The notes beneath the pieces were generated by a model. It had not been told where the DNA came from, made no database searches, and saw only the letters and a list, made by a program, of their open reading frames with translations. Shown piece after piece: positions 28,801-30,706 of a DNA stretch of 64,000 bases. A program made the position numbers and the translations under genes. The DNA is taken from assembly GCF_030144855.1 (NCBI RefSeq), contig NC_082710.1, positions 150,164,001-150,228,000 on the forward strand, given 5' to 3'. Origin of the DNA: Hypanus sabinus (taxonomy: Eukaryota). The first letter of the stretch is position 1, and every line of letters begins with the position of its first letter.

Positions 28801-30706
28801 ATTCTGCTGCAACAACTGACCTACTGAAGCTTCTTACCTTCCTGTGCATTCAAACTAGCATTCCAAAGTCAGAGCCAGAGCTGTTCGGACGGAATATCCG
28901 TGTTCATTCCGGTTGCTGCGGACCCGTTTTCATGGGGAGTACGTGGGGTGGTGGAGGGCATATGCGGGTATATTCTGGGGGGAGTGTATACCACTAGGAG
29001 TCTAGCTTTTGGAGATCTGGCCTGATTGGGTGGTTTATTTTGCATGGGGCTGGCTGTAGTTAATTAATGTCCAGTGCCCCACGTTTTGTGTATTGCTCTC
29101 CCTAAACGTCCCACCCCTCCATAAGTCTGGACAGAACTTTCCCAGTCTAATCTTGGGCCCAGTTTTAAATGTTGCTGCTGTTTTCCCTCAGTGGGAAACT
29201 TCAGTTCAGTTCCACTTCTTCGTTTGTAATGTCCAGTCACAGGGTTAGTTTGAGCTTGCTGCAGTAATTGGTCTTGGGGTACGAATGAATCTCTGGCCGG
29301 CTCAGAGGAAGCGAGTCCCCCTCACCTGCCCTCTGTTGTATTTCACAGGCTCTGGCCCACTGACTCTTAACCCGGCCACAGCCAGCCCGTGGCTCTCCTT
29401 ATCCGGGGATCTGAGCAGCACGGGGCCCCGGCCCGAGAAGCGGCCGCTGCCCGAAGACCCGCTGAGGTTTGACCCCAGTCCCTGTGTCCTTGCTCTCGGA
29501 GGGTTTGTGATGGGGAGGCACTACTGGGAGGTGAAGGTGGGCCACAAGATCTCCTGGACTGTCGGGGTGGCGAGCGAGCTGGCCAGGAGGAAGGGCAGCA
29601 TTGTGCTGTCTCCCACCCATGGATATTGGACTCTGGGACTCAGGAACGGGGTGACATACAAGGCCTTCACCGGTGTCTCGGACGAGCTCCACCTGGAGCT
29701 GCAGCCCCGGGTAGTGGGGGTTTACCTGGACTACGAGGGGGGCCGGGTATCCTTTTATAACGCCGATGGGATGTCCCACCTCCACACCTACCACGACCGG
29801 TTCAGCCAGAGGCTCTTCCCGTTCTTCAGCCCAGGAGCGACGCTGGGTGGCAGGAACGCCGAGCCCCTCCGGCTGCTCCTTTCTTCTACCGGCGATCCCG
29901 GCCCGAGGCTGGCTGGGCCACCAGAGCCCGAACGAGAGGATGCCATCCTTGCGGCTCCACGCGGGGACCCCAGCGACGGGTTCCCGGGCAGGCGCTGGGA
30001 CTGGGTCTGCTCCGCCCTGCTAATCTCCCTCGCCGCCGCCTGGCCGGGAAGAGCCGACTTCCTGGAGGTTTACTTGGTCTGCTGTGGTGTGCTGGGGTTT
30101 TCCGGCCTGTGGTGGTCTCTGCTGGATAACAGGAACCTGGCTGGGATCTCTTGGCGGTTCTGTGGTGTGCTGGGCCACGCTGGGCTCTCTTGCTTCCTGC
30201 TGGCTTCTGCTGGGCTCCCTGGAACCTGCCTGGTTGGGCTGAGTTTCTTCGGGTGGTGTCTGTCATCCCGAGGTTACACAGTCTCTTCCTGGCTGGCGGT
30301 GAGCTTCGGGGGCTTTCTGGGGCTCCTGTGGCTGTTGGACAATAATACTTGGATCTGGTGGGTCTGCTGTGGTGTGCTGGGATATGCTGGAACATTCTTA
30401 TCATTGCTGGGCTGTGACAATGTCGCCCTGGTCTGCTGGTGGTGTTGTGGCACCCAGGGTTACGTTGGCTTGTGCCTTCTCCTGCTGTGCTCCTCTCCGC
30501 TCTGGGGTCTATTCTGGATCGTATCGGGCATGGTGGGGCTGCGTTTGTCCCGGAGGGGCTCCACACACAGCCCGTGGGCTCTGATGGGCCTGCTGTCCTA
30601 CAATGCAGTGTGGTGTGTGCTGGTGGGCAACGCTGAGCTCTCTGCGATGTCCCTGGGCATCGGCACCTTAGCGTGGTGGCCGTGCTCCCGTCCTCACAGC
30701 AGCTGA
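22825..30706 (+). CDS. TRIM-derived coiled-coil + PRY/SPRY protein with C-terminal multi-pass hydrophobic tail; RING/B-box not seen; ~607 aa
   Basis: Exons: ATG at 22825-22827 (ATG|gtgaga, tentative), 23070-23165 (96 nt), 23361-23594 (234 nt), 24248-24264 (17 nt), 24353-24468 (116 nt), 29349-30706. The sizes and phases (0,0,0,2,1) resemble class IV TRIM genes. The start is uncertain. Confidence 0.82.
23070..23165 (+). CDS. TRIM-type 96-nt coiled-coil exon
   Basis: ttgtag|GCT...GAG|gtgagt; AALNEIWNTLKERQKAIASAQIKQKLNMAEVE. Confidence 0.88.
23361..23594 (+). CDS. TRIM-type coiled-coil exon (234 nt)
   Basis: cttgcag|AAG...CAG|gtacaa; heptad-rich KAFVTEMDQIRLCFAEMTELL...DSFQLLQ. Confidence 0.9.
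23650..23900 (+). mobile_element. tRNA-derived SINE (V-SINE-like)
   Basis: A-box-like tggtagcgtag and B-box ggttcaat; core tgggtttcc..ctctggtttcctcccacattccaaa. Related copies at ~39445-39570 and ~44975-45800. Confidence 0.65.
24248..24264 (+). CDS. TRIM micro-exon (17 nt, GFSELR)
   Basis: Long polypyrimidine tract, then tttgaag|GGA...AG|gtaagt. Supplies the required phase 0-to-2 change. Confidence 0.8.
24353..24468 (+). CDS. TRIM linker exon (116 nt)
   Basis: gtacag|G...CCAG|gtaaga; CPQDLRPLEY...LKYGLWKELGAVISP (Y..WK.....I.P pre-PRY motif). Confidence 0.88.
24540..25800. mobile_element. Decayed CR1 fragments (24540-24980 +, ~25100-25800 -)
   Basis: MEFSLDKCAELHFGRSN remnant and CR1 3' UTR motifs. 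Confidence 0.7.
29349..30706 (+). CDS. Terminal exon: PRY/SPRY (B30.2) plus ~240-aa hydrophobic tail
   Basis: tttcacag|GC; LTLNPATASPWLSLS..RFDPSPCVLA..GRHYWEVKVG..VGVYLDYEGGRVSFYNA..LFPFFSP. The frame stays open to TGA at 30706. Confidence 0.92.

Follow-up and report, generated by a model that had tools for sequence, protein, structure and literature searches.

The stretch analyzed here, a 64,000-nucleotide segment of the genome of the Atlantic stingray Hypanus sabinus (NCBI RefSeq assembly GCF_030144855.1, contig NC_082710.1, positions 150,164,001 to 150,228,000 of the forward strand; hereafter the window, whose own numbering is used throughout), carries on its plus strand a gene of the TRIM type, the last exon of which (29349–30706) encodes a PRY/SPRY module, a linker, a putative membrane domain and the stop codon without interruption. 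The exon start is marked by a polypyrimidine tract and acceptor AG at 29347–29348, and the whole exon lies within one open reading frame (ORF, 29285–30706) and is recovered as a single tblastn high-scoring segment pair. In the frame read from 29351, Pfam assigns residues 4–52 to PRY (29360–29506; PF13765, E = 2.1e-12) and residues 56–167 to SPRY (29516–29851; PF00622, E = 1.4e-23), both well over cut-offs and together making up the B30.2 domain (29360–29851). Downstream follow a Pro-rich, acidic linker (29870–29986), which is weakly conserved (34% identity to Heptranchias) and differs in length among species, and a domain of about ten predicted helices (29987–30685), supported by AlphaFold2 (AF2) secondary structure, hydropathy, positive-inside counts, conservation and the ratio of nonsynonymous to synonymous substitution rates (dN/dS, or ω). 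The TGA stop codon (30704–30706) aligns within one residue of the stops of eight shark orthologues. An initial annotation, made from the letters of the window alone, had proposed that the B30.2 exon continues in frame through a Pro-rich linker into a hydrophobic tail, and the ORF, the splice acceptor, the Pfam matches and the TGA bear this out; the polar turns it singled out (DNRN, SSRGYT, DNNT and SRRGST) are all present in the tail. The first AATAAA/ATTAAA polyadenylation hexamer past the stop lies at 30970–30975 and a second at 31438, with none inside the last exon.

The window's protein is identical to an NCBI model of this locus, a 629-residue 'zinc-binding protein A33-like' of Hypanus sabinus, longer than the 607-residue model assumed at first. 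Three further plus-strand exons were placed by tblastn: a coiled-coil exon at 23079–23177 (model residues ~27–59), corresponding to shark exon 2; a second coiled-coil exon at 23343–23594 (residues ~50–133), 50% identical to the shark orthologues and equivalent to a region covered by Pfam TRIM_CC in the shark protein; and an exon at 24312–24473 (residues ~128–179) encoding the last part of the coiled coil and the linker that joins it to PRY. The five-exon layout is common to the Hypanus gene, Heptranchias and Stegostoma, and SPRY and tail share one exon in all four species checked (Hypanus, Heptranchias, Stegostoma and Rhincodon). The first coding exon of the public model (18552–18620, plus strand) contributes 23 residues that, by tblastn, are non-homologous to the shark RING/B-box exon; a GT donor lies directly 3′ of 18620, and the translated interval 17900–18906 shows nothing RING-like. 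Searching the window for the RING and B-box by tblastn with four shark N-termini, at E values up to 50, returned chance matches only. An assembly gap of 161 N (18907–19067) begins ~290 nt downstream of this exon, about where sharks place RING/B-box exon 1 (~4.6 kb upstream of exon 2), and the stingray protein may or may not be a complete E3 ubiquitin ligase. The gap sits beside a G-run, between the TRIM gene and a divergent butyrophilin-like gene. Intron 1 also houses a large tandem array (19951–20774), in which a 15-nt unit is present 54 times and a higher-order period of 91 nt is superimposed; the array gives rise to long spurious ORFs in two plus-strand frames.

A search with the tail alone retrieved the Hypanus protein and four shark proteins of 743–778 residues (Pristiophorus, Heptranchias, Cetorhinus and Scyliorhinus), whose tails are 49–57% identical over 96% of the tail and each of which has a RING, B-box, coiled coil and PRY/SPRY. 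A full-length search brought in Heterodontus, Stegostoma, Rhincodon and Chiloscyllium, for eight shark species in all; the Rhincodon and Chiloscyllium models are without exon 1, probably owing to an assembly or annotation problem. Pfam places the RING of the shark orthologue at residues 7–47, the B-box at 81–118 (E = 4e-10), TRIM_CC at 151–263, PRY at 289–337 and SPRY at 341–448, all over cut-offs. The proteins of the eight sharks combine a complete RING–B-box–coiled-coil (RBCC) module with PRY/SPRY, a variable acidic linker and a conserved tail of ~235 residues with about ten predicted transmembrane helices. Two class IV TRIM features, coiled-coil exons and a C-terminal PRY/SPRY, are present in the window, where SPRY is not the last domain, and ~280 residues follow SPRY in all nine full or partial orthologues. 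Within the nine-species alignment of the membrane part indels are rare, short and in frame, the ends fall within one residue of each other and ~47 columns are invariant, mostly Trp, Cys, Gly, Leu and Tyr; all eight sharks keep the tail without frameshifts and none stops right after SPRY.

In a tree built from the RBCC–SPRY columns only, the nine proteins with a tail group together as a single clade (Shimodaira–Hasegawa-like approximate likelihood-ratio support, SH-aLRT, 100), with one gene per species and a branching order that approximates the species tree. The clade branches outside the A33-like TRIMs on a stem of 0.57. Sequences of chimaera, lungfish and salamander belong with the A33-like proteins and are all of the tailless kind, and the best tailless relatives overall are A33/xnf7-like TRIMs of ~470 residues, 45–47% identical, that stop just past SPRY. 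With a homologous tail in the SPRY exon, a single clade and a common synteny (below), the window's gene is very probably the ray orthologue of a single-copy TRIM gene specific to elasmobranchs, whose members go by generic database names ('A33-like', 'TRIM69-like', 'TRIM39-like').

The tail itself, ~235 residues rich in Leu, Gly, Cys, Trp, Val, Ser and Phe, is stop-free up to the TGA, and its DNA contains only 10% A, so that stop codons are rare in it. A skeptical explanation is that the tail is a chance open frame in an A-poor, G+T-rich 3′ untranslated region or minisatellite, over which gene predictors have extended an ORF whose functional product ends at SPRY; short 10-nt GT-rich repeats reported by Tandem Repeats Finder (TRF), an open antisense frame and a low ESM recognition score would fit such a scenario. 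However, when the 771 nt were shuffled 20,000 times, all 257 codons stayed open in just 0.2% of cases, and the remaining two plus-strand frames contain 5 and 4 stops in Hypanus and 5–9 in their Heptranchias counterparts. The GC content of third codon positions in the tail (0.74 vs ~0.56 at positions 1 and 2) gives a periodicity that matches the SPRY part, while the shortage of A at the first two positions is accounted for by the amino-acid composition. A tandem-repeat or minisatellite artefact was rejected as the cause of the open frame, because TRF reports just three GT-rich arrays in the tail, of 20–24 nt and two copies each, and the real repeats are at the protein level, with spacings that are multiples of 3. 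The antisense ORF (226 residues, 29886–30566, minus strand) owes its existence to the T-poor reverse strand and represents a compositional by-product and no gene.

Substitution patterns point the same way. Between Stegostoma and Rhincodon, a close pair with unsaturated synonymous divergence (Nei–Gojobori method, NG86; dS ~0.17), ω is 0.33 for the tail and 0.61 for SPRY, and the tail shows 25 synonymous vs 24 nonsynonymous codon changes (binomial p = 3e-4 against neutrality) and no indels, whereas 900 nt of 3′ flank contain 36 gap columns. Between Hypanus and Heptranchias, where dS is saturated, the same method gives 0.29 for the tail and 0.23 for SPRY, with third-position differences in excess in both (0.42 vs 0.25–0.29 in the tail); across all ten pairwise tail comparisons ω ranges from 0.17 to 0.60. 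Branch-specific dN/dS for the skate tail was compromised by saturated dS (0.9–2.3), and one branch estimate was negative. Taken together, the frame, length and stop kept across the shark–ray split, the ω values near 0.3 and the third-position excess indicate that the tail is translated, that purifying selection acts on it and that, by these evolutionary measures, the constraint on it is no weaker than that on the SPRY domain, which leaves the chance-frame explanation scarcely credible.

To what structure this constraint corresponds is suggested by several lines of prediction. AF2 runs with five and then ten sequences returned 9–10 helices of 18–27 residues each, joined by loops of 3–9 residues (Hypanus model residues 391–408, 413–435, 439–465, 467–484, 490–508, 512–530, 534–559, 561–580, 586–603 and 606–623), and hydropathy likewise predicts hydrophobic helices. 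The initial count of about nine to ten hydrophobic stretches agrees with the AF2 helices, while a crude insertion-energy scan, on an approximate scale, passes only 5–7 windows as strongly membrane-competent in the tail and zero in the RBCC–SPRY part. When the ten-helix layout is applied, the loops on the N-terminal, SPRY-bearing side contain 4–11 Lys and Arg residues in total and those on the other side 0–2, in all 10 sequences, and acidic residues cluster on the loops opposite the SPRY side. A positive-inside pattern is the expectation for a real polytopic protein, and the tail most likely crosses the membrane several times, leaving both of its ends in the cytosol, in keeping with the earlier proposal of cytosolic PRY/SPRY modules on a polytopic membrane domain.

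The same proposal had gone further and envisaged a sensor-gated pore or transporter, that is, a membrane domain acting as a channel, transporter or pore whose state is set by ligand binding to the cytosolic PRY/SPRY. Transporters often share the arrangement predicted here, in which the ten helices form two parallel four-helix repeats; this layout, an invariant Glu at the start of helix 2 and conserved acidic residues in the non-cytosolic loops could be read in its favor. Against it, conservation falls almost wholly on Gly, Cys, Trp, Leu and Tyr positions, with very few polar residues inside the helices, the loops span 3–9 residues only and no transporter or channel is matched (query-length TM-scores below 0.4, E above 0.5). 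Furthermore, the repeated helices carry a motif of two Cys followed by Gly at i, i+3 and i+6, and a small-residue face of this kind is typical of tight helix packing. The invariant Gly, Cys and Trp residues and the Gly spacing suggest tight packing or lateral self-association instead of a polar pore, and we consider a gated conduit unsupported and improbable.

Comparison of the two halves of the family alignment with hhalign (probability 98.7%, E = 1.6e-16, 41% identity over 79 ungapped columns) reveals an internal duplication: copy 1 comprises helices 2–5 (Hypanus model residues 419–497, 30071–30307) and copy 2 helices 6–9 (residues 514–592, 30356–30592), 285 nt or 95 codons downstream, both on the plus strand. 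Helices 2, 3, 6, 7 and 9 resemble one another, as do helices 4 and 8, with probabilities of 90–98% that are inflated by compositional bias, and repeat families in the DNA are spaced by 78, 207 and 285 nt, each a multiple of 3. These alignments identify the predicted domain as a tandem duplication of a ~95-residue four-helix unit that was itself built from a helix-sized sub-repeat, in a hierarchy of helix, hairpin, four-helix and eight-helix levels.

Searches for relatives of this domain elsewhere came back nearly empty. None of the 10 family tails matches Pfam at E below 0.3, and the tail profile has no match among PDB sequences. Against 1.84 billion representative proteins at E ≤ 0.001 the profile finds only a family member, a 292-residue skate protein and a spurious bacterial protein; the latter, 2809 residues of Gly/Ile/Asn/Trp-rich tandem repeats (E = 1.8e-5 in 11 stretches), was set aside as a compositional match. 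A word-indexed search with the tail alignment for stand-alone relatives among proteins of 141–450 residues scored 8000 candidates, none at E ≤ 0.01. Structure searches with the AF2 model of mean predicted local distance difference test (pLDDT) 60.6, by Foldseek against AlphaFold Database clusters and the PDB and by shape in the ESM Atlas, gave query-normalized TM-scores below 0.4, the model being too weak for this to count; one fold hit at TM 0.62, normalized by match length, covers a 121-residue fragment only. The best scores of an ESM Atlas feature search (0.77 and 0.53) were judged noise, as was herpesvirus LMP1 at 0.52. Within the limits of these searches, the tail is without a detectable relative outside elasmobranchs.

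Two histories could account for such an orphan. In one, the tail began as an exon of some ordinary family of membrane proteins, was captured by fusion to the TRIM gene and has diverged strongly. Profiles built from 5–10 sequences are weak on compositionally biased helices, and the long stem (0.57) outside the A33-like TRIMs means that the clade may be old, both of which leave some room for this account. Set against that are the empty searches (no match at E ≤ 0.001 in the 1.84 billion representatives besides the family and the spurious bacterial protein, and nothing from Pfam, PDB sequences or three fold libraries), the placement of the whole tail in the SPRY exon in all four species checked and the hierarchical repeats, which fit local growth; we hold capture to be unlikely. 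In the other, the domain arose where it stands: the lack of an outside homologue, the location in the same exon past the stop of its relatives and the repeat hierarchy make it reasonable to suppose that the domain was born locally, when a stop was lost and the sequence behind it amplified in frame. It probably grew by serial duplication of a short hydrophobic C-terminal extension that appeared once the ancestral stop, located a few codons beyond SPRY, had disappeared. Membrane-prone peptides are known to be encoded by T-rich non-coding DNA (PMC7005711); the base composition of the tail itself is no evidence for a non-coding origin, and its third positions resemble those of the SPRY part. We entertain, as a tentative idea, a fully de novo route in the elasmobranch ancestor, in which stop loss would have exposed a read-through peptide that expanded to one, two and four helices and then to two units, kept since before the shark–ray split and useful in its own right. 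A skate gene consisting of the tail only would show precisely such usefulness of the ten-helix module.

We therefore propose, with a probability of roughly 0.8, that the family is an elasmobranch-specific, polytopic, membrane-anchored TRIM E3 ligase. In this model the tail would span the membrane about ten times and fix the TRIM coiled-coil dimer flat on the cytosolic face of the membrane. A conserved partner near the membrane would be bound there by the conserved PRY/SPRY and ubiquitinated by the RING. The coiled-coil dimer, which already figured in the initial annotation, is drawn from TRIM biology only.

Several observations weigh against this model. Confidence in the AF2 models is low (pLDDT 48.7 and 60.6, predicted TM-score 0.36 and 0.42), and their secondary structure alone was used for this reason, which leaves helix number and packing uncertain; just 5–7 segments exceed the crude insertion threshold. 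The argument for translation of the tail is wholly evolutionary, and the program YN00, which failed or was unstable on the tail composition, returned an ω of 0.82 for the ray–shark tail, a figure judged unreliable given saturated dS and skewed composition. The Hypanus branch of the RBCC–SPRY tree is long (1.0 vs 0.1–0.3 for sharks), and without a RING/B-box exon in the window the stingray copy may be RING-less or decaying. Finally, a skate keeps only the tail, whose role may consequently not depend on the TRIM part.

The skate in question is Leucoraja erinacea (JAMYXN010000067.1), in which a 292-residue tail ORF, annotated as 'uncharacterized protein LOC129694460', occupies 9953–10879 of the extracted locus. 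It differs by in-frame indels only and has a longer C-terminus, and within the 20 kb examined around it a degenerate SPRY remnant of ~40 residues with an in-frame stop precedes the tail; no RBCC exons were found within 10 kb of it. Judged from its sequence, the skate ORF may encode a stand-alone membrane protein or be a recent relic, and the SPRY remnant and the long Hypanus branch hint at erosion of the TRIM part in batoids. Rays and skates might be dismantling the gene, with the Hypanus copy reduced to a RING-less coiled-coil/SPRY/membrane protein or decaying, in either case no E3 ligase, and the skate retaining the membrane module only. Besides the skate locus and the long Hypanus branch, such dismantling is suggested by the failure to find a RING/B-box in the window, by the non-homologous 23-residue exon that opens the public model and by searches that returned no tail-bearing protein for Pristis, Mobula or Amblyraja. 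Conversely, the 161-N gap occupies the expected site of exon 1, the Rhincodon and Chiloscyllium models lack that exon too, and all remaining Hypanus exons are intact, with ω values of 0.2–0.3 for SPRY and tail against Heptranchias. Batoid dismantling is a possible but not a favored account; it covers the window's copy and is compatible with the membrane-anchored ligase as the explanation for the family.

Upstream of the TRIM gene and divergent from it, a minus-strand butyrophilin-like gene was delineated by Pfam at 3619–7951, with a V-set domain at 7403–7951, a BTN-type C2-set at 5176–5763 and SPRY at 3619–4080. A divergent butyrophilin-like gene lies upstream in Hypanus, Scyliorhinus, Heptranchias, Cetorhinus and Stegostoma, and at the skate locus a minus-strand Ig C2-set gene takes its position. 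The kept divergent arrangement raises the possibility that the pair shares a bidirectional promoter, and on a speculative note the neighbor could be a functional partner of the TRIM gene. Downstream, the neighbor in the Heptranchias (24227–28545) and Leucoraja (18081–20879) loci is a short-chain dehydrogenase (adh_short); in the Hypanus window, where tblastx was swamped by repeats, this neighbor was not confirmed.

Elsewhere, the window contains a reverse-transcriptase ORF fragment resembling a long interspersed nuclear element (LINE) at 54732–55706 (plus strand), confirmed by Pfam RVT_1, and further LINE-like fragments recognized from motifs by eye at 34095–34496 (minus), 46554–46889 (plus), 56071–56481 (plus), 44080–44514 (minus) and 62293–62646 (plus). 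A 140-residue ORF at 8930–9352 (minus), in an intron of the butyrophilin-like gene, looks by eye like the C-terminal part of a Tc1/mariner-type transposase and has no Pfam match at E ≤ 0.001.

Our literature search found no description of a TRIM with PRY/SPRY and a polytopic tail, and in agreement with the initial annotation, which had not recognized the arrangement, neither a family match nor a describing paper came to light. The gene represents a real and apparently undescribed domain architecture, a lineage-specific TRIM variant with an orphan polytopic membrane domain. TRIMs fall into eleven classes by C-terminal domain (PMC8005608), and if the model holds, a class-IV-type TRIM with a conserved ten-helix domain would constitute a further one, the only membrane-bound class having a single anchor and no SPRY. 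Such a protein would also keep both its RING and its B30.2 recognition module on a membrane at all times, in the oldest lineage of jawed vertebrates to have adaptive immunity. The clear repeat hierarchy makes the orphan domain a tractable case for how polytopic membrane domains arise and become fixed, and the skate, in keeping the module alone, offers a natural test of stand-alone function. Were the de novo route correct, this would be an unusually large and old membrane domain from non-coding sequence, grafted onto an E3 ligase scaffold of innate immunity.

Among known systems, the class IV TRIMs of the A33, xnf7 (nuclear factor 7) and TRIM39/bloodthirsty kind share with the tail family the order of RING, B-box2, coiled coil and PRY/SPRY and the encoding of B30.2 in the last exon. 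They end a few residues past SPRY (~470 residues), whereas the tail family runs ~280 residues further, and while A33-like genes are greatly expanded, the tail family is single-copy per species and forms its own clade (support 100). The class XI proteins TRIM13 and TRIM59 likewise are RBCC proteins with a hydrophobic C-terminus that holds them to the membrane (PMC4021871, PMC8005608). They have no recognized domain beyond hydrophobic regions and stand outside the SPRY-bearing group (PMC4021871); with one hydrophobic anchor and no SPRY, as the initial annotation had noted, they are set apart by architecture from a family with PRY/SPRY and about ten helices. The nearest precedent is zebrafish btr31, a fish protein of the TRIM39/btr type with B30.2 and an acquired membrane segment (PMC3137616), in which, however, a single mid-protein transmembrane segment replaces the B-boxes and coiled coil, whereas the tail family keeps the full RBCC–SPRY and adds a polytopic C-terminus.

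Beyond the TRIMs, the MARCH, Hrd1/synoviolin-type and transmembrane RNF E3 ligases likely follow a common principle with the tail family, in which several helices hold a RING at the cytosolic face for membrane-proximal substrates (PMC4021871). These polytopic RING E3s are unrelated and have other domain orders, none with a TRIM coiled coil and PRY/SPRY, and no similarity of theirs to the tail, in sequence or fold, was found. Butyrophilins (IgV-IgC-transmembrane segment-B30.2) are, like the tail family, membrane proteins with a cytosolic B30.2, and their SPRY is ~30% identical to that of the family. They place an Ig ectodomain and a single transmembrane segment before B30.2, whereas the tail family is without Ig domains and has a coiled coil before B30.2 and its predicted helices after it.

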